IMG/VR virus record: IMGVR_UViG_3300005826_000294
Coordinates: 1-64,000 of that record
Direction: 5' to 3' (one strand)
DNA length: 64,000 nt
Shown: piece by piece, positions 4,593-37,032 of the stretch
Position numbering within the stretch: the stretch's first letter is position 1
Layout of the letters: each line of letters starts with the position of its first letter
The notes under the pieces: model-generated
Databases searched by the model: none
The model's input: the letters and a program-made list of their open reading frames with translations, nothing else
What the model was told of the DNA's origin: nothing
Made by a program: the position numbers and the translations under genes

Positions 4593-4636
4593 GGTTTTTT
4601 TCCCAATTGATTTGTTGTTTATTAGATGTTCAATAG

Positions 4637-4709
4637 TAGGCCCGCAGGGATTTGAACCCTGAACCTTTTGGTTAAAAGCCAAATACTCTACCAGTTGAGT
4701 TACGGACCC
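4637..4709 (-). tRNA. tRNA-Lys(UUU)
   Basis: Cloverleaf; anticodon arm TTTGG-CTTTTAA-CCAAA; T-loop GTTCAAAT; no encoded CCA. Confidence 0.9.
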
Positions 4710-4716
4710 TAAAATT

Positions 4717-5046
4717 TTATCTATATATTCCCTTCTTTGAATTACACTTCATACAATAATGTCCTACTTCCTTTGATGAAGATATTTTCTTTTTTTGGAA
4801 TTTTGAAGAAAATTTTGTAAGAGTTATAGTAATAATATCTTTAACAACACATGGACATTCAACAATAAAAACTATAAATATAAAAACAATATATAATGGC
4901 CAAAAAATCCACCATACAATATCATTCTCAATTTCATATGGTTCGACCATTTTAAGTTTAATTTTATTACCAATTACTATAAAAATTAATGGTATGGTTA
5001 CATAACTAATTATACATATTAAAAAAATTATTGGATATAAAACCAT
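4717..5046 (-). CDS. Membrane protein with a C-terminal CxxC tail
   Basis: Two hydrophobic segments; tail SSSKEVGHYCMKCNSKKGIYR. Confidence 0.65.
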   Translation of the reverse strand: MVLYPIIFLICIISYVTIPLIFIVIGNKIKLKMVEPYEIENDIVWWIFWPLYIVFIFIVFIVECPCVVKDIITITLTKFSSKFQKKKISSSKEVGHYCMKCNSKKGIYR

Positions 5047-5768: not shown

Positions 5769-5841
5769 TAGGTGCGCAGGGACTTGAACCCTGAACCTTC
5801 TGGTTAAAAGCCGGATACTTTTCCAATTGAGTTACGAACCC
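5769..5841 (-). tRNA. tRNA-Lys(UUU), one mismatch each in the acceptor and anticodon stems
   Basis: Paralog of 4637-4709; loop CTTTTAA. Confidence 0.7.
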
Positions 5842-5848
5842 TAAAATT

Positions 5849-6394
5849 TTATCTATAAATCCCTTTTTTCGGATTACACTTCATACAATAATGTCTTACT
5901 TCCTTTGGTGAAGATATTTCCTTTACATGTGGGATACTGTTTCTCGGATCCAGACATGTCTCAGTCAGGGTTGCCCCTCGCAGATTCGCACTTATCAGAT
6001 TCGCGCCGTCCAGATCCGCGCCGGTCATATCCGCGCCTCGCAAATCCGCGGAGGTCAAGTCCGCGCCGGTCAGATCCGCGCCGGACAGATACGCCCATTG
6101 CAGATTCGCCCATCGCAGACACGCACCTCGCAGATCCGCGCCGGACAGATCCGCGCGAGCCAGATCCGCGCCGGACAGTTTCGCGCCGAACAGATCCGCG
6201 CCGGACAGTTTCGCGTTGGCCAGAACCGCGTCTCGCAGTTTCGCGTTGGCCAGAACCGCGTCTCGCAGATCCGCGCCGGACAGTTTCGCGCCTTGCAGAT
6301 TCGCGTTGGCCAGATCCGCGCCTTGCAGATTCGCGCCTCGCAGATCCGAGCCTGGCCTGATATTGTACTCGCGACCATTTATCGTCCTCTTCAC
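5849..6394 (-). CDS. Pentapeptide-repeat protein fused to the C-terminus of the 4717-5046 protein
   Basis: A(D/N)L.G repeats; ends ISSPKEVRHYCMKCNPKKGIYR. Confidence 0.85.
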   Translation of the reverse strand: MKRTINGREYNIRPGSDLRGANLQGADLANANLQGAKLSGADLRDAVLANAKLRDAVLANAKLSGADLFGAKLSGADLARADLSGADLRGACLRWANLQWAYLSGADLTGADLTSADLRGADMTGADLDGANLISANLRGATLTETCLDPRNSIPHVKEISSPKEVRHYCMKCNPKKGIYR

Positions 6395-7113
6395 CCTAGC
6401 ACCTCCAGTTTCCTACATCTCCACTTATTGCTTGTCCTGTGCAGATCTTCCCTCCTGCACCTGACACGTACGATACTTCGATCAGGGTATTTTTTTCCTA
6501 TCCATTCCCTACTCGCTAGGTAGATTCCGGGGTGACACTTTGTGTCAGACGTGGAGAAATAAGGGGCTGTGTATTCTCCAGGTGTGTAATGTGTGTCTCC
6601 AACCTCAGTAGACCTCTCGGTCCGCCAGCCGTAGATCCAGTCGTCACCCCCGATCTCGAGTCCTCCTCCGAGTATCTCTGCGTCTGTCACGCGTGGGATA
6701 CTGTTGCTCGGATCCAGACATGTCTTAGTCAGATCCGCGCCGGTCATATCCGCGCCTCGCAAATCCGCGGAGGTCAAGTCCGCGCCGGTCAGATCCGCGC
6801 CTCGCAGATCTGCGGAGGTCAGATCCGCGCCGGTCAGATCCGAGTCGGCCAGACCCGCGAAGGTCAAGTCCGCGCCGGTCAGATCCGCGCCTCGCAGATC
6901 CGCTCCGGTCATATCCGCGCCTCGCAGATTCGCGTGTCGCAGATCCGCGTTGGTCAGATACGCGCCTCGCAGATTTGCGTCTCGTAGATCCGCGCCGGCC
7001 AGATACGCTTGTCGCAGATCCCTCCATTGCAGATTCGCCCGTCGCAGATCCGCGCATCGTAGATTTGCGCCTGGCTTGATATTGTACTCGCGACCATTTA
7101 TCGTCCTCTTCAC
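6391..7113 (-). CDS. Pentapeptide-repeat protein with a C-terminal domain (CHPGIYLA motif)
   Basis: ADLTG/ADLRG repeats; 4-bp overlaps with both neighbours. Confidence 0.9.
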   Translation of the reverse strand: MKRTINGREYNIKPGANLRCADLRRANLQWRDLRQAYLAGADLRDANLRGAYLTNADLRHANLRGADMTGADLRGADLTGADLTFAGLADSDLTGADLTSADLRGADLTGADLTSADLRGADMTGADLTKTCLDPSNSIPRVTDAEILGGGLEIGGDDWIYGWRTERSTEVGDTHYTPGEYTAPYFSTSDTKCHPGIYLASREWIGKKYPDRSIVRVRCRREDLHRTSNKWRCRKLEVLG

Positions 7114-7547
7114 CCTAGCACCTCCAGTTTCCTACATCTCCACTTATCTCCTGCCTTGTGCAGATTTTTCCTTCTGCATCTCACACGCACGATACGTCGC
7201 CTGGGGTAGTTTTTTTCCAACCATTCCCTGCTAGAGAGGTAGAGACCAGGATTACGCTTTGTATTAGATGTAGAGAAATAAGGGGCTGTGTGTTTCCCTA
7301 AGATGTAATATGTTCTCCCGGATGTGACTGACTTCTCCACCCGCCATCCGTAGACCCAGCATGTGTCGCTGATGGACATTTCTGTCAGGTATGACTCGCG
7401 GAAGTTCGCCCAACGCAGATTCGCCCTAATGAGGTCTATCCCGCTGAAGTCTGACTCGCAGAGGTATGACTTGCGAAAATCCATACAACGCAGGTCCGCC
7501 CTCGGATAAATTTCGTACTCAACTCCGTTTTTATTTTTGATCTTCAT
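7110..7547 (-). CDS. Degenerate pentapeptide-repeat paralog with the same C-terminal domain
   Basis: Shares YGWR...TAPYFSTS...KWRCRKLEVLG with 6391-7113. Confidence 0.75.
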   Translation of the reverse strand: MKIKNKNGVEYEIYPRADLRCMDFRKSYLCESDFSGIDLIRANLRWANFRESYLTEMSISDTCWVYGWRVEKSVTSGRTYYILGKHTAPYFSTSNTKRNPGLYLSSREWLEKNYPRRRIVRVRCRRKNLHKAGDKWRCRKLEVLG

Positions 7548-9625: not shown

Positions 9626-9701
9626 TGGTGAGAGCGGAGGGGTTCGAACCCTCGACCTACAGATTAAAAGTCTGTTGCTCTTCCAGCTGAGCTACACTCC
9701 C
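9626..9701 (-). tRNA. tRNA-Lys(UUU) with encoded CCA
   Basis: Canonical cloverleaf; ACAGA-CTTTTAA-TCTGT. Confidence 0.95.
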
Positions 9702-9714
9702 ATAAAAATCTTAG

Positions 9715-9773
9715 TACCACGGGTGGGATTCGAACCCACACTGAACGGATTTTAAGTCCGTTGCTACCGTGGT
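9715..9773 (-). tRNA. D-armless tRNA-Leu(UAA)-like RNA
   Basis: ACCACGG/CCGTGGT acceptor; AACGGA-CTTAAAA-TCCGTT; GTGGG-TTCGAAT-CCCAC; only TAGC between acceptor and anticodon arm. Confidence 0.65.
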
Positions 9774-9780
9774 TAAACTT

Positions 9781-10263
9781 CTACACTATTATCTCCCAAC
9801 CCTTCATTCTCATTTTTTCCTCCCTCTTGTCAGTACACCTAATAAGTTTACGGGCTTTACCATTCCTTATGTTTTCAAGTATCTTTGGAACACTTAAATA
9901 ATCTAGAAAAGAGTTTAATCCATATCTGTTTAGTCGCAATGTATTAATATCGAAATCCGGAGAGAACACCAGATTTGACACTACATCAATTTGCATCTGT
10001 TCATCTCCGTGAACAACAAACCTTTCAAGATGAATACTATTATCATAATTACTACAATAATATTCAAGTGCCAAAACTCCAAATGACCCAAAATGACGTA
10101 GCAAAAACTTCTTAAAACTAAATCGATATTTTGGATCGATACAACAATCGATGTCATTTGTTGACTTACCGGCAATTGTGTCTCGTACATAACCTCCAAA
10201 CACAAAACCAAAGTTGTTAGCAATTTCATTTACGAGTTCTTTTTTATCCATGATGGCCTCCAC
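9781..10263 (-). CDS. Minimal nucleotidyltransferase (CCA/poly(A) polymerase head-like)
   Basis: FGGYVRD...DID catalytic motif and DFDIN (RDFTIN-like). Confidence 0.7.
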   Translation of the reverse strand: MEAIMDKKELVNEIANNFGFVFGGYVRDTIAGKSTNDIDCCIDPKYRFSFKKFLLRHFGSFGVLALEYYCSNYDNSIHLERFVVHGDEQMQIDVVSNLVFSPDFDINTLRLNRYGLNSFLDYLSVPKILENIRNGKARKLIRCTDKREEKMRMKGWEIIV

Positions 10264-12245: not shown

Positions 12246-12513
12246 TTAGAATAACATATTTCTGTTATTATAGTGTTATTGTCTCGTAGAGACATGTACA
12301 CATACACATATCTATATGCCTTTAGTTATACGGCATTTGGCAAAAAATTAATTCTACTATGTGACCACCCCCGCCCCTCGTATATACACCTGATATTGCT
12401 CAGGTTTCTTGGGCCCACCCTCGTTTGAAAATAATGATCTTTTCGTGTAAGGTCCTAAAATTACAAAAGATCATTGTCCAAAGGACAAATGATCCAGCGC
12501 CATGATCTTTTAA

Positions 12514-12586
12514 CGGTGTTGTGGGAATCGAACCCACGTCTTTCGAGTCTTTCTGCTCGACGCTCTTCCAGTTGAGCTAAACACCT
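12514..12586 (-). tRNA. Atypical tRNA-like gene with an 8-nt anticodon loop (CAGAAAGA, Phe-like)
   Basis: D, anticodon (TCGAG/CTCGA) and T arms intact; 6-bp acceptor; A33 instead of U33. Confidence 0.6.
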
Positions 12587-12629
12587 TACATTTTTCTACT
12601 CCTGAACAATATTGAAATTATATGGTGGT

Positions 12630-13207: not shown

Positions 13208-13280
13208 TGAGAGCGGTGGGGCTCGAACCCACGACCTACAGATTAAAAGTCTGTTGCTCTTCCAACTGAGCTACGCTCCC
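13208..13280 (-). tRNA. tRNA-Lys(UUU)
   Basis: Canonical cloverleaf; near-identical to 9626-9701. Confidence 0.95.
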
Positions 13281-13309: not shown

Positions 13310-13524
13310 TTAATTCCCCTAGGGGAAAATGCTTCTTTTCCCAAAATGCTATCACTATGCTTGCTACTTGATAGTAGGTTGCTATACACTTACTATAATA
13401 CTGCTGTATTCTTCACAAGCATTTTACTGGGGGGTTTTAAAACTTTCCCATACAGCAAAATGCTAAGTGCTTGTAATCATTAGGGGCAGGTTCAAAGAGC
13501 CAAAACCCCCTAGAGAAATTAAAC
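13310..13524 (-). ncRNA. 215-nt structured element, copy 1
   Basis: Near-identical to 13936-14150; the ends form a 16-bp helix with two G-U pairs on the minus strand. Confidence 0.65.
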
Positions 13525-13528
13525 TTAG

Positions 13529-13600
13529 CGGGACTGACGGGGATCGAACCCGCCTCGCCGGATCGACAGTCCGGAGGCCTCACCAGATGCCTACAGTCCC
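13529..13600 (-). tRNA. tRNA-Asp(GUC)
   Basis: CCGGA-CTGTCGA-TCCGG; acceptor GGGACTG/CAGTCCC. Confidence 0.9.
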
Positions 13601-13610
13601 AATAAAATAA

Positions 13611-13694
13611 TGCCTGAGGTGGGACTCGAACCCACATGCTCATAAGAACGGCAGATTTTAAGTCTGCTGTGTATGCCAATTCCACCACTCAGGC
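13611..13694 (-). tRNA. tRNA-Leu(UAA)
   Basis: GCAGA-CTTAAAA-TCTGC; long variable arm. Confidence 0.95.
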
Positions 13695-13727
13695 ATAGCA
13701 GTTTATACTTATGCTGAGGAGTTATAA

Positions 13728-13850
13728 CTAAAACTTAATGTGCTTAAAACACAGTATCTTTCCGTCCAACTTCATTGTGTTCCTTTTCTCCACCATTTCC
13801 CCACACACCGTACATTTTACCAAACGGATATCACAAAGATTCTTGTACAT
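13728..13850 (-). CDS. 40-aa zinc-finger-like peptide
   Basis: AAGGAG RBS; CTVC...CFKH. Confidence 0.5.
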   Translation of the reverse strand: MYKNLCDIRLVKCTVCGEMVEKRNTMKLDGKILCFKHIKF

Positions 13851-13935
13851 TGTCTTTCTCCTTGGTTGAAAAGTTCTACGACCGTTAGCATTACCCAGAC
13901 AATACCACGTGGAGGTGGTCGCTTATTGTCCATCT

Positions 13936-14150
13936 TTAATTCCCCTAGGGGAAAATGCTTCTTTTCCTAAAATGCTATCACTATGCTTGCTACTTAATAG
14001 AACAATGCTATACACTTACTATAATACTGCTGTATTCTTCACAAGCATTTTACTGGGGGTTTTTAAAACTTTCCCATACAGCAAAATGCTAAGTGCTTGT
14101 AATCATTAAGGGCAGGCTCAAAGAGCCAAAAACCCCTAGAGAAATTAAAC
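13936..14150 (-). ncRNA. 215-nt structured element, copy 2
   Basis: Direct repeat of 13310-13524. Confidence 0.65.
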
Positions 14151-14331
14151 AACAGAGATTTTTCGCAGACAAGATGACCATAAGAGTCGAACCTCATAGG
14201 ATCACTCCCAAGAATAACCCTTGTGTAAAGAAATATGTCTAGTCAGACATAGACACATGTAAGTATTTACACATGATGTGATCTCGGTTGGTTATCCAGT
14301 GGCACCACGAGGAGGTGATCACATGCCACCA

Positions 14332-14362
14332 TACTCCCCCCCCTTTGACGAGGGGGGGAGTA
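14332..14362. terminator. GC-rich hairpin downstream of 14386-14772
   Basis: TACT-C8-TTTGACGA-G7-AGTA, 11-bp stem; no U tract. Confidence 0.5.
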
Positions 14363-14385: not shown

Positions 14386-14772
14386 TTAGCTCCCAACAAC
14401 CTCATCCTTAAAAGACTTGGTGGCCTTATCGGCAACCTCCGCTTCGGAAGTTGCTGAACTCAAATCAAGCTTGCTTGTATCAACCCAACCCGTAGCCCAG
14501 AGATAGACATTACCCCTGGAGTTCTTCTTGGCGACACAGCTGATATGCAAGGCCCCGAGGGCCTCTTGAGGCACGCTTAACTTCACTCTCTTCCCAACGA
14601 GATCCTGATGGGTTCCTTTTTGAAACACGAGGTTAGTGCTGATAACCAAAGCATCCGAAGGACGCCTTCCATGGGCCTCACGCAACTTGGCATTCTCACT
14701 CTGGAGAGCCGCGAGCTGAGCTTCAAGGGCGGCCTGGGTCTCAAGCAAAGTCTTCTTGCTAGGAACGTTCAT
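14386..14772 (-). CDS. Hypothetical protein (N-terminal coiled coil, beta-rich core)
   Basis: GAGG RBS; higher GC than the core genome. Confidence 0.7.
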   Translation of the reverse strand: MNVPSKKTLLETQAALEAQLAALQSENAKLREAHGRRPSDALVISTNLVFQKGTHQDLVGKRVKLSVPQEALGALHISCVAKKNSRGNVYLWATGWVDTSKLDLSSATSEAEVADKATKSFKDEVVGS

Positions 14773-15443
14773 TATTCCTCTTCCTTTACGCCGACTTACA
14801 AATCCCCCTATTGAGGATAGCCTCAGTCGTTTGGCTTGTATAGTTTTACAACTATACTTCTATTAAGTTATCTAAGCATGACAGCCGGTAGGGTCTTCCC
14901 ACTTGTCGCTTAGTTTTGAAACACCGAAAGCTAAAATCACCTCAGCACCACCGCCAAAGTAATTTTTTTGCTTTCAGCCCCTAAGAGCGAAAAAGTTGTG
15001 GTTTCAAAAAAACCTAATCATTTCGCTAAGTTTTCCTATGTGATTTTTAATCACATTGAATGCCTTGTGAATACCACGCCCAACAGGAAAAGCTGTGAGC
15101 CGGAGGCTCAGGCTCGCGCCCCCCCGATAGATTTTTGTAAAGAAAAACATATATAGAGTATAATATAGAAGTTTCTTGGTATAGTAATAACACAGATCCA
15201 GCAAATAGAGTATAATAATTTTATAGAACATAGAATAATGTATAATAGTTTATAGGATAAAAGATTTTTTAGATAGTAGAGTAATAAATTAAAGTATAAT
15301 AACAGATATAGAATAATGTATAATGGTTTCTTAATTAAGGAAGTATGGGGTAATAATTTATAATATAATGGTTTTTATAGATTATAGAAGAATAATAGAT
15401 TATATAATAGGTAGTTTTATAGTTTATAAGTTTCTTGTTGTTT

Positions 15444-15645
15444 ATTCAGATAAAATTATTGATTATTCTTTGCCGTTTTACTTATTGATTATTCTTTTAT
15501 TGCCGTTTTACTTTATATTCAGATAAAATTATTGATTATTCTTTGCCGTTTTACTTTATATTCAGATAAAATTATTGATTACCGCCATTTTTATTTTACT
15601 TTTATTGATTATTACCGTTTATTGTTTATCTCCTCGCCGTTTTTT
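15444..15645. repeat. AT-rich iteron-like repeats
   Basis: ATTCAGATAAAATTATTGATTA at 15444, 15517 and 15560; GCCGTTTT four times. Confidence 0.75.
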
Positions 15646-15769
15646 ACTGAATAAAATGATGGGAAAATTTATTCAGGTGATGTATAAAATTATTGGATTA
15701 ATAAGACGAATAATTACGGGCAGTTATGGGGGCGAAAATAGTATAAAAAAGACGAATAATAATAACACA

Positions 15770-16906
15770 TTAGGCGGGCACAATTTTTCTCACGATGGGA
15801 TGATTTTTCAATTGATTCACGACATACAGGTCATCTGTTTGAATAATAACATCAGAGGTAGAGATCAGATTTCTTTCTAATTTATAATTAAAGTCATCTT
15901 CAACAATAGAGAAGTCATATTTTTCTTGAAGGTTTTTAATTTCATTTAGGGCATATTCAAAGGCATCCATAACGCCGAGGCGATAATTTAGTTCTTGATC
16001 TCTATTCATATTCAGAAGGTTTGGTGGATTATCAAACCCCTGATATTTCAAACCTTGTTCAGTAATAAAGAACTGCAATTGGGAATCGGTAGGTTTTATT
16101 GAAAGAATGTATTGTTTCAATTCTTTTTCTGCTCTTTTTGCTATACGCATAGAAGCCTCCTTAACGGATTTATATAATTCTTTCACAGCTTTCTGCCATT
16201 TTTTTGGTTCTTGTTTTAATTCTTCAAAGAACATTCTTGGAGCTGATTTCATATTTGATGGCAAGAACCAAGTCAATTTATCAGAAGGTGGAAACCCCAA
16301 GAACCATCTAAAAATCTCATCTTTCATATCGGGCCATTTTTGTAAATATCTTTTTAGTTCTATTTTAGCATCATTAAGAATAGGATAGAACTCAATATCT
16401 CTTAGGTTATAGTTTTTTTCTTCGAATGTTTTTTTATGTTGACCTTCTGGTGAATAATCAGTATTTGATATATTTTTAGATGGCAGTCCAAAATTTTTAA
16501 ACAAGAATTGTCCTAAATGAGCGACTTCATGTTCGATATTTCTATGAATTGAAGCTTTAATTCTTTCATATTGATGAATAGTAGAAGGATCAAGCCAATT
16601 ATTATCAAATATAATTTCAATAGTATTAGTTTTATAATTATAAAGTCCGAAGTATTCTGGATCTTGTTCAGCAAAGATAAGTACATTAACATTCAAATAA
16701 TCCCATTCTTTTACATACCAATTTTCCAGATCCAAAGGAATAGTAGTTATAAAATCATATTTTGGGGAAACGAAATCTTTTTTTGAAAGTTCTTTAATTT
16801 CAGGATTATTTGTATTTAAATACACTTGAGATGCATATCTTGTAAGCACCCAGTCCCATATTTTTTTTACCATTTCTGGTGGGGGTTTAAATCCTTTTTT
16901 TAACAT
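15770..16906 (-). CDS. Hypothetical protein with an HEXXH zinc-peptidase-like motif
   Basis: IEHEVAHLGQ. Confidence 0.65.
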   Translation of the reverse strand: MLKKGFKPPPEMVKKIWDWVLTRYASQVYLNTNNPEIKELSKKDFVSPKYDFITTIPLDLENWYVKEWDYLNVNVLIFAEQDPEYFGLYNYKTNTIEIIFDNNWLDPSTIHQYERIKASIHRNIEHEVAHLGQFLFKNFGLPSKNISNTDYSPEGQHKKTFEEKNYNLRDIEFYPILNDAKIELKRYLQKWPDMKDEIFRWFLGFPPSDKLTWFLPSNMKSAPRMFFEELKQEPKKWQKAVKELYKSVKEASMRIAKRAEKELKQYILSIKPTDSQLQFFITEQGLKYQGFDNPPNLLNMNRDQELNYRLGVMDAFEYALNEIKNLQEKYDFSIVEDDFNYKLERNLISTSDVIIQTDDLYVVNQLKNHPIVRKIVPA

Positions 16907-35314: not shown

Positions 35315-36418
35315 TCAAACTTGGACATTTTTACCAAGTTCTTTAGGTTTGTACGAGGCACCGTAGGGACCTCGAAGAAGCCGCTGAAGTATATTGATGG
35401 CAGCATTTATATCCGCATTTCCGCTGTGATCACATTTTAAACATCTAAATACTTCACCTTTGCGATTTCTCCTCTCTGTATGACCACAATTAGAACATTG
35501 CTGACTGGTATAATAAGACGGCACACTACGAAAGCAAACACGGTTTTCTTCCGTTGCCTGTTGAAGTCTAGTTAACCAATAGCGATAATTCCAACTACCG
35601 AGAGAACGACGCATATTTTTACTCAAGCGTCGTTTGAGTTTTGTTTTATAATTTAAATTGCTTAACTTCTCTACCACAATTAATTGCGGATTTTCATTTA
35701 TAATTTCTTTTACTGTTTCGTTGATATATTGCTTTAAAGCATTTCTTCTTTTCTTTTGATTCTTCGAGCCATATTTACATCGTTTAATTTTTTCAATATA
35801 TTTCTCAATATCTTTACCGAATTGTTTTCCATCAGAAGTAGATGCCAATGCTTTAATGCCTGTATCCACTCCAATAAGTTTTCCAGATGTTTTCTTGGAT
35901 TCGGTTTCTATTTTAAACACAAATTGAACATAGTCATTTGTAATAGTATAAGCATTTAACCTTCTACCTTTTTCATTCCACTTATTAAATTGCCTATGAT
36001 GTTTAATTGGAATGTCTAAAATAGTTTTGCCTCCAATTGAAGCAAGGTGTAACCAAGCATCAAATGTGCTATTTTTACTGGGTTGTAATTCGGCAATAGT
36101 AGAAGAAACACACATTCTCTTACCTTTATGTAGAGGCATTTTTATTTTGCTTGGCTTATTCTTCCATCGTTGCTTCACTGTTAAAATCATATCTATTGCT
36201 TCTCTAGCAGCAACTTTTCTCAATCTTGCGGATAACCAAGTTTCTGGTAGATTAACTATGTCTTTTAACAATTTGGATTTACTTGGAATTTTTTCCCAGA
36301 ACTTTTGGATAAAGAAATTACACACTCTGCCATATTCTTGAAGAGTATTTTCTAATTGCTGTTTCTTGTGTTTGGTAGCAAACTTGGTGCTACATTTAAC
36401 AGAGCGTTTGAATTTCAT
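35315..36418 (-). CDS. tnpB: TnpB RNA-guided endonuclease
   Basis: RuvC GVDTG / VVEKL / NADINAA intact; zinc finger CSNC...CLKC. Confidence 0.92.
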   Translation of the reverse strand: MKFKRSVKCSTKFATKHKKQQLENTLQEYGRVCNFFIQKFWEKIPSKSKLLKDIVNLPETWLSARLRKVAAREAIDMILTVKQRWKNKPSKIKMPLHKGKRMCVSSTIAELQPSKNSTFDAWLHLASIGGKTILDIPIKHHRQFNKWNEKGRRLNAYTITNDYVQFVFKIETESKKTSGKLIGVDTGIKALASTSDGKQFGKDIEKYIEKIKRCKYGSKNQKKRRNALKQYINETVKEIINENPQLIVVEKLSNLNYKTKLKRRLSKNMRRSLGSWNYRYWLTRLQQATEENRVCFRSVPSYYTSQQCSNCGHTERRNRKGEVFRCLKCDHSGNADINAAINILQRLLRGPYGASYKPKELGKNVQV

Positions 36419-37032
36419 TTTACCTTTGCTTGTTTCAATTTCTTTCTATTCTCAGCAGATCGTTTCCCATAGATTCTTGCGGAAAAAGACGACATTAAAG
36501 ACAATATGTCTTCCACTAATTCTGACTCATATGACTTCGGTAAAGTATCTTCTATTACTTCTACCTCAACACCAAAACTTTCAAAATATTTTTTCAACAG
36601 GTTGAAATTAAATCTAACAAGTCTGTCTTTGTGCTCAACTACAAGTCGTGATATTTTGCCATCTGCCGCCATGTCCATAAGTTTTAACAGTTTGCGGCGA
36701 TTGTCTGACATACCAGAACCAACTTCATCACAGATGTATTTAACTTTGTAATCTTTCTCGGCACAGTATTTGACTAATCTCGCTTGTTGCCTATCTAAAT
36801 CACCTTTTTGTTTTTGTTCGTGGCTAGACACTCTACAATAGATTGCTATGTCGTCTGTTTGCTCTTCGTCTTCAAATCCCTGCATCGCTTCTATTTCAGA
36901 AAGTAAATATCTGCGATGCCCGCCAATTGTTTTTTGAGGAGAGATCTTATCATCGGATTCCCATCTGCGAAGCGTTTTTGGATCTACACCCAATAGTTCT
37001 GCGGCCTCTTTTATGGCGATGAGTTTATTCAT
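36415..37032 (-). CDS. tnpA: IS607 serine recombinase transposase
   Basis: N-terminal MerR-like HTH; IYCRVSS; GSGM; EHKDRL. Confidence 0.95.
   Translation of the reverse strand: MNKLIAIKEAAELLGVDPKTLRRWESDDKISPQKTIGGHRRYLLSEIEAMQGFEDEEQTDDIAIYCRVSSHEQKQKGDLDRQQARLVKYCAEKDYKVKYICDEVGSGMSDNRRKLLKLMDMAADGKISRLVVEHKDRLVRFNFNLLKKYFESFGVEVEVIEDTLPKSYESELVEDILSLMSSFSARIYGKRSAENRKKLKQAKVK

Follow-up and report, generated by a model that had tools for sequence, protein, structure and literature searches.

Stable RNAs whose purpose is obscure have been known from phage tRNA clusters for a long time. Those of the phage T4 cluster, species 1 and 2 (rnaC/rnaD), are structured non-tRNA molecules of 100–200 nt that are co-transcribed with the tRNAs and undergo the same processing; we know of no function for either. 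In E. coli, the short tRNA-operon spacer RNA 3'ETS-leuZ serves as a sponge with defined sRNA partners. Bacterial MITEs are intergenic DNA elements of 100–400 bp with terminal inverted repeats and stable folds.

Theta and minimal, P4-less HDV-like ribozymes have been described in Caudoviricetes, in phage tRNA regions (Kienbeck et al. 2024; PMC10879173). Such ribozymes cut at their own 5' edge and so form the 3' end of the upstream RNA, and the tRNAs concerned have no encoded CCA, a nucleotidyltransferase gene being found close by. The same study reports hundreds of examples that are not associated with tRNAs and whose role is open (Kienbeck et al. 2024).

The locus described here belongs to virus record IMGVR_UViG_3300005826_000294 (301,683 bp, from a parent contig of 312,596 bp), which originates from an estuary metagenome; the window, meaning the whole stretch of DNA that was analysed, is the first 64 kb of that record. 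The genome has a GC content of 29.9%, which rises to 36–61% between 5.8 and 15 kb. Ten tRNAs lie near the element (nine found by ARAGORN and one by Rfam only), all on the minus strand, as are all the sizeable ORFs around it, and no tRNA of the array has an encoded CCA. An ORF of 160 aa at 9781–10263 (minus strand) matches nucleotidyltransferases (PolyA_pol head) and could, from its sequence, encode a CCA-adding enzyme in short or split form. The features around the two copies of the element are listed here in minus-strand order, 5' to 3':

14386–14772, minus: ORF of 128 aa, with homologues at 52–67% identity; the anchor of the syntenic contigs that carry a ribozyme and lack the element
14334–14360, minus: G/C-rich hairpin at the 3' end of the message of ORF 14386–14772, 3 nt upstream of the ribozyme B cut
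14277–14330, minus: predicted minimal HDV-like ribozyme B (P1 of 6 bp, P2 of 8 bp, L3 UCCUCGU, J4/2 CCGA)
14151–14276, minus: leader of 126 nt between ribozyme B and copy 2, homologous to the relatives' post-ribozyme leader, with a degenerate T-arm remnant
13936–14150, minus: copy 2 of the element, 215 nt, 95% identical to copy 1, its 3' end 4 nt upstream of the ribozyme A cut
13878–13931, minus: predicted minimal HDV-like ribozyme A (P1 of 7 bp from G1-U, P2 of 6 bp, P3 of 3 bp)
13728–13850, minus: Cys-rich ORF of 40 aa (CxxC...CxxH; weak LIM-like match), with an AAGGAG ribosome-binding site right after ribozyme A
13610–13695, minus: tRNA-Leu(TAA), within the 626-bp unit that separates the two copies
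13528–13600, minus: tRNA-Asp(GTC), without encoded CCA, whose 3' processing site sets the 5' side of copy 1
13310–13524, minus: copy 1 of the element, 215 nt, beginning 4 nt after the tRNA-Asp discriminator, with a terminal helix of 17 bp (21 bp with flanks)
13208–13280, minus: tRNA-Lys(TTT), its RNase P site 29 nt past copy 1

Since the 40-aa Cys-rich ORF starts directly after ribozyme A, its message would begin with the ribozyme. Upstream of this operon, the AT-rich intergenic stretch at 15000–15770 is dense in promoter-like sites and in direct repeats, with a 41-nt unit present three times alongside units of 21–27 nt, and may be a regulatory or origin region.

The tRNA array has peculiarities of its own. 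Four separate tRNA-Lys(TTT) genes occur within 9 kb (4636–4709, 5769–5841, 9626–9701 and 13208–13280, minus strand), which fits heavy AAA use in a 30%-GC genome. The tRNA at 12512–12587 (minus) has an enlarged anticodon loop that ARAGORN reads as the four-base anticodon gaaa; among its relatives, one on a related contig is read as gatc (L048, 2963–3039), and it may be a tRNA of frameshift type or one unusual in another way. Adjoining the tRNA-Lys gene at 9626–9701 is a tRNA-like sequence of 59 nt (9715–9773, minus) that scores 52 bits with the Rfam tRNA model and is not called by ARAGORN. Elsewhere in the window, three tandem pentapeptide-repeat genes (5849–7547, minus) form a 61%-GC patch in the 30%-GC genome, and an ORF of about 376 aa at 35390–36500 (minus) is TnpB-like (Cas12f1-like_TNB). 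The related contig L047 has a TnpB-like ORF near its tRNA region as well, and a pentapeptide-like ORF directly after its ribozyme.

A preliminary description of this DNA had drawn attention to two near-identical copies lying 626 bp apart and to the pairing of their ends, and both hold. Repeat search and alignment give a spacing of 626 nt and ten differences between the copies, five of them inside a 10-nt stretch, and neither nhmmer nor a covariance model finds a third one anywhere in the 301,683-bp record. Direct reading confirms 16 contiguous end pairs in which both non-Watson–Crick positions are G-U on the minus strand; counted in full, the terminal helix of copy 1 has 17 pairs, or 21 when the flanks are included. 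The 16-mer end motif occurs four times in the window against 0.34 expected. The span from TTAA to TTAA is 13310–13522, with two more bases common to both copies. The inner 12-bp helix (13453–13464 with 13418–13429) is likewise as described, its one non-Watson–Crick pair being G-U on the minus strand. An alternative 8-bp helix does exist, one position away from where it had been placed (13450–13457 with 13402–13409), but the conformational switch built on it finds no support: adopting this helix costs +5.3 kcal/mol and its equilibrium probability is ~0, against ~1.0 for the terminal and 12-bp helices. The sequence AGCAUUUU is present three times in the element, with one complement, so that alternative pairings can be drawn on paper, none of which is favoured. 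The apical loop of the element is palindromic (GUUUUAAAAC), as is its 3' end. The palindromic ends, CCCCTAGGGG, occur genome-wide only at these two places; CTAG is under-represented in this genome (418 against 784 expected).

The element is more stably folded than its composition would give, with a z-score of -3.2 and none of 200 shuffles as stable, but the plus strand gives the same z, so this score does not pick a strand. What strand signal the fold carries comes solely from the three non-Watson–Crick positions of the two long helices, all G-U on the minus strand, and from the penalty of 4.7 kcal/mol incurred when the minus-strand pairs are threaded onto the plus strand. The setting adds to this. 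Both copies lie in a minus-strand operon of tRNAs and mRNAs, copy 2 next to a predicted ribozyme cut and copy 1 between tRNAs, and the earlier preference for RNA structure over bare DNA terminal repeats, and with it a minus-strand RNA, thereby gains support.

The differences between the copies are unevenly placed with respect to the fold. None falls in the terminal helix, the 12-bp helix or the adjoining helices; positions 42 and 183 change from C-G to U-A, a compensatory exchange; five differences remodel one hairpin, which is kept in a different register; and one perfects a small hairpin. Random mutants with ten substitutions keep the structure as well in 3–12% of trials and the stability in 10–35%, so that structural conservation between the two copies is significant only weakly, with p ~0.03–0.12 for the fold and 0.1–0.35 for the energy. 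A divergence of 5% without decay of the fold suggests some constraint, and the evidence that the fold is under selection is suggestive only. Two other readings of the element were considered and set aside. A 45-aa plus-strand ORF inside the element changes P to L, V to E and G to Q between the copies and is thus not conserved as protein. A promoter-like site on the plus strand within the element, TTGATA-17-TACTAT, is of a kind no commoner here than in shuffles, and its first hexamer is altered in copy 2.

Relatives of the element were sought widely. Rfam has no match for it, whether at the gathering score or with E relaxed to 10, in agreement with the earlier statement that no known family could be recognised. 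The analogies offered at the same time, to 6S RNA (alike in size and paired ends) and to GOLLD and ROOL (alike in their phage location near tRNAs, and themselves 3–4 times longer than the element), likewise lack support from the Rfam models, even with E as high as 10. A blastn search against 50,697 phage records returned the tRNAs only and nothing for the element. In IMG/VR, the end motif and a pair of internal seeds turned up single chance matches only, checked by nhmmer; an end-gap-end pattern had zero matches in 185,579 GTDB species genomes and 241 million JGI metagenome records, and internal 21-mers had zero matches in the GTDB genomes and JGI metagenomes. The genome, metagenome and viral scans used exact seeds, by which diverged members could be missed. 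When a covariance model of the two copies was run on the window and on the relatives' loci, it found only the copies themselves. By these sequence searches, the element is an orphan for which no family was found.

Several candidate identities were tried and rejected. A bacterial Y RNA bound by Ro, or an RNA circularised by RtcB, has no family-model match and the genome has no TROVE or RtcB gene; tmRNA gives no covariance match and ARAGORN finds none. The paired ends recall a retron msr-msd, but there is no RVT_1 in the genome, and for a TnpB guide RNA the sole TnpB lies 21 kb off. As an antisense RNA, the element has no complement longer than 12–13 nt in the phage genome. In piggyBac-like ends, the CCCTAG motif would stand on the other side of the TTAA from where it is found here.

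Because Rfam returned low-scoring matches of HDV type, the whole genome was scanned with an HDV-like descriptor. Exactly two good candidates emerged in 301 kb; they have G1 at 14330 and 13931, lie on the minus strand and flank the transcript of copy 2. Ribozyme A is predicted to cut at 13932|13931, 4 nt after copy 2, and ribozyme B at 14331|14330, after the hairpin of the upstream ORF; ribozyme B is the positional orthologue of the ribozyme in related phages. In both, P1, P1.1, P2 and P3 can form a nested double pseudoknot, and a G1-U wobble marks the cut site. L3 follows the consensus UCCNCGN in each, its CC pairing with the GG that follows P1, and J4/2 (CNRA) opens with C; in ribozyme A, L3 is UCCACGU, its CC pairing with the GG of P1.1, and J4/2 is CUAAC. 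The Rfam scores, in bits, of the HDV-type matches at these same two sites are under the gathering thresholds (RF00094, 23.9 against 50; RF01787, 16.7 and 15.0 against 37; RF02682, 16.2 against 44), those models expecting a P4 stem that the minimal forms do not have.

Stronger evidence comes from comparison. In an alignment of eight distinct sequences (ribozymes A and B of this phage and those of related contigs), all 18 pairs of P1, P1.1, P2 and P3 are standard in 100% of sequences, and seven of the 18 change on both sides in a compensatory manner. None of 500 shuffles matches this, and controls in which the alignment was slid pair at 25–52%. As a family, judged by this covariation, the predicted ribozymes are real. 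They fit the minimal HDV-like class in Caudoviricetes, as assigned with an HDV-like descriptor apart from the exact one used by the authors of that class.

Homologues of the 128-aa ORF are found on metagenomic contigs L047–L053 and L057–L059, and each of these contigs has the ORF, a hairpin, 5–6 nt and then one ribozyme of the same type; six of these ribozymes lie at the following places:

L047, 10453–10508
L048, 1797–1849
L053, 1323–1378
L057, 484–539
L058, 512–566
L059, 1018–1070

In every relative, and in other IMG/VR phages, the hairpin ends 3–6 nt before the cut. An IMG/VR scan with the core motif found the same hairpin-then-ribozyme module in unrelated GC-rich phages, where it is intergenic and occurs up to three times per contig:

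L064, plus strand: modules at 5012, 5532 and 6829
L092, L062, L066, L068 and L096: further contigs with the module

The recurrence of this arrangement suggests that hairpin-then-ribozyme modules act as intercistronic RNA punctuation. The ribozyme family and the upstream-hairpin rule are the firmer and more general result of this work, ahead of any role for the element.

The terminal helix of copy 2 sits where the relatives have a simple hairpin before the cut, and neither BLAST nor the covariance model detects the element in the relatives' syntenic loci. BLAST similarity between ribozyme A and its counterpart in L053 runs upstream into the last 12 nt of the element; from this short match we infer that the base of the copy 2 terminal helix probably descends from an ancestral pre-ribozyme hairpin. 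Ribozyme B and its leader resemble the L048-type arrangement, whilst ribozyme A with its Shine–Dalgarno-led ORF resembles the L047 type, which places copy 2 at the seam of two module types. Downstream of the ribozyme, a tRNA-like RNA of ~95 nt is conserved in relatives (L053, 1475–1570; L048, 1940–2045); its acceptor-like stem has 7 bp, its T-arm is perfect and it contains a long insert, and ARAGORN makes no call for it. The contig L055 (1036–1134), from another sample, matches the window exactly down to 14164 and then continues into unrelated sequence of 58% GC; a separately assembled contig of run X1, possibly derived from the same data as L055, diverges likewise at 14164. This point is 13 nt upstream of copy 2. 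The divergence shows the site to be variable in nature and is, by sequence comparison, a strain variant or recombinant.

Four estuary metatranscriptome runs contain the region, in the form of assembled contigs, which carry neither strand nor ends. Contigs of runs X1 and X2 cover 12.4–15.2 kb nearly continuously at a depth of 5–11, against patchy coverage at depth 0–4 for 26–32 kb of the same phage, a difference that argues for real transcription over even carry-over of DNA. Both predicted cut sites are spanned by contigs from these libraries. The depth of the element (6–10) is no higher than that of neighbouring mRNA (5–11) and does not mark it as a stable RNA of very high abundance. An apparent circular or tandem form of 626 nt, together with a hybrid copy in X2, was rejected as a product of repeat collapse and bubble popping in assembly.

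We put the chances at about even that the element is a helix-capped non-coding RNA domain excised from a minus-strand phage tRNA/mRNA precursor, copy 2 by an HDV-like ribozyme and copy 1 by tRNA processing. Beyond the anatomy of the element, the covarying ribozyme fold and the synteny, all of them observed, we infer the strand of transcription, the cleavage, and the release and stability of the element RNA. The element would be a self-folding domain of a polycistronic minus-strand precursor, released as an RNA of ~215–250 nt by the processing signals that adjoin it. The 3' end of copy 2 would be made by the ribozyme A cut, 4 nt past the terminal helix, and its 5' side would extend back to the ribozyme B cut unless another nuclease cuts the leader, giving a piece of 399 nt whose ends would be 5'-OH and 2',3'-cyclic phosphate. 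Copy 1 would be freed when the 3' end of tRNA-Asp is processed and RNase P cleaves tRNA-Lys. The G/C-clamped terminal helix of 17 bp may cap both ends against exonucleases and prevent misfolding with the adjoining ribozyme and tRNAs. Copy 2 probably grew from a simple pre-ribozyme hairpin, copy 1 being a later copy of the whole helix-bounded unit. Any role in trans, whether as a decoy or sponge in the manner of the spacer RNAs of tRNA operons or through self-association via the palindromic apical loop, is a guess on our part. A bolder form of the same idea holds that this is a new lineage-specific phage RNA gene, derived from a pre-ribozyme hairpin, with ends made by a ribozyme or by tRNA-processing enzymes and a trans-acting product that serves as decoy or sponge or self-associates via the GUUUUAAAAC loop and the palindromic 3' end; we hold this to be doubtful.

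The excised-domain reading must be set against a selfish origin, in which the element is a MITE-like, non-autonomous transposon of 213–215 bp with imperfect inverted ends of 16 bp, inserted twice at TTAA or TA by a host transposase acting in trans and transcribed only passively. Much of the anatomy would suit such an element, since the repeated unit stops exactly at its TTAA-tipped inverted repeats, these repeats are 16 nt long and complementary at 14 of 16 positions, and the size and AT-rich foldable interior are typical; TTAA (or TA) stands at both tips of both copies, where a target duplication would be inseparable from the repeat itself. The surroundings are also of the right kind, being permissive non-coding spots in a higher-GC, recombination-prone island with a variant break 13 nt from copy 2. 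However, there are two copies only, both oriented as the operon, with no solo ends within two mismatches genome-wide, and no family member appears in the exact-seed scans of GTDB, metagenomes and IMG/VR. Copies at unrelated TTAA sites, which the preliminary description had named as the mark of a MITE, are absent from the genome, viral and metagenome exact-seed scans. The phage genome has no DDE_3, DDE_Tnp_1 or reverse transcriptase, its one TnpB being 21 kb away. Each copy has an RNA-processing site no more than 4 nt away, the 3' tip of copy 2 seems to be homologous with an ancestral pre-ribozyme hairpin, which would be unexpected for an imported transposon end, and the mismatches are all G-U on the transcribed strand with one internal pair compensated. 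A MITE-like origin is weakened by these observations, and we regard it as unlikely.

It is also possible, though again rather improbable in our judgement, that the element is a neutral by-product of modular recombination. The tRNA island would then have been put together from two related array types, and the element would be a junction hairpin that overgrew, was duplicated once by template switching or unequal crossover, persists because it does no harm, and acts at most as a spacer or insulator in cis. Parts of the island do match two array types (ribozyme–leader–tRNA-like, L048-type, and ribozyme–SD–ORF, L047-type) with copy 2 at their seam, a natural variant diverges at 14164, and the phage genome offers no antisense target longer than 13 nt. 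Relatives have a simple hairpin without the element, and as these syntenic relatives manage with the plain hairpin, the extra 190 nt need not be functional. Yet a random duplication is not expected to have both its boundaries exactly at the base of a helix. Moreover, no long helix is touched by the ten differences, amongst which is one compensatory pair, and 5% divergence has left the fold intact, as under some constraint. Far less probable still is a DNA-level site, the ends CCCCTAGGGG and the direct repeats serving as sites for protein binding, recombination or packaging around a 626-bp cassette that holds ribozyme A, the small ORF, tRNA-Leu and tRNA-Asp. The direct repeats do bracket a compact cassette, and the rarity of CCCCTAGGGG (two genome places, in a genome with 418 CTAG against 784 expected) could be taken in its favour. 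Against it, no recombinase stands beside the cassette among the roughly half of nearby ORFs scanned, a scan without a specific search for integrase families; the apparent 626-nt circular contig and the hybrid copies come from repeat collapse and bubble popping; and a G-U asymmetry and a compensatory pair would be meaningless for duplex DNA. Nothing specific speaks for such a site.

Should the element prove to be no more than a MITE or a scar of recombination, what lasts is the ribozyme family with its hairpin rule. On the reading of an excised RNA domain, a phage operon is punctuated by a conserved module of hairpin and ribozyme, and a 215-nt domain took up the hairpin position in one jumbo phage and was then copied between two tRNAs. 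Were this RNA released and stable, it would mean that ribozymes shape non-tRNA RNAs in phages and would provide a concrete case of the birth of an RNA gene; were the trans-acting version true, this would be a case in which a ribozyme assists the biogenesis of an RNA other than a tRNA within the tRNA array of a phage.

Amongst known systems, T4 RNAs C and D come near in position and strand, the element being likewise a putative non-tRNA structured RNA inside a tRNA unit and bounded by processing sites. This type is a functional class, not a homology family, and the likeness is one of position in which no sequence relationship is expected. The T4 RNAs are single-copy and are not known to be bounded by a 16-bp terminal helix or by a ribozyme; the element is present twice, with such a helix in each copy and a predicted ribozyme after copy 2. 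The likeness to 3'ETS-leuZ is that a piece excised from a tRNA precursor can act in trans, although no target of the element was found in the phage genome. In contrast to bacterial MITEs, the element has no family, dispersed copies or cognate transposase, and its orientation and placement track RNA-processing sites. With the theta and minimal ribozymes of Caudoviricetes, the two predicted ribozymes of this locus share the P4-less form, the location in a tRNA region, the CCA-less tRNAs and a nucleotidyltransferase ORF (Kienbeck et al. 2024), but the genome here is that of an estuarine, 30%-GC jumbo phage and not of a gut phage, and the RNA upstream of the cut is not a tRNA: it is a hairpin-ended mRNA in the case of ribozyme B and the 215-nt element in that of ribozyme A. 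The locus links the stable RNAs of phage tRNA clusters with the non-tRNA HDV-like ribozymes of phages.
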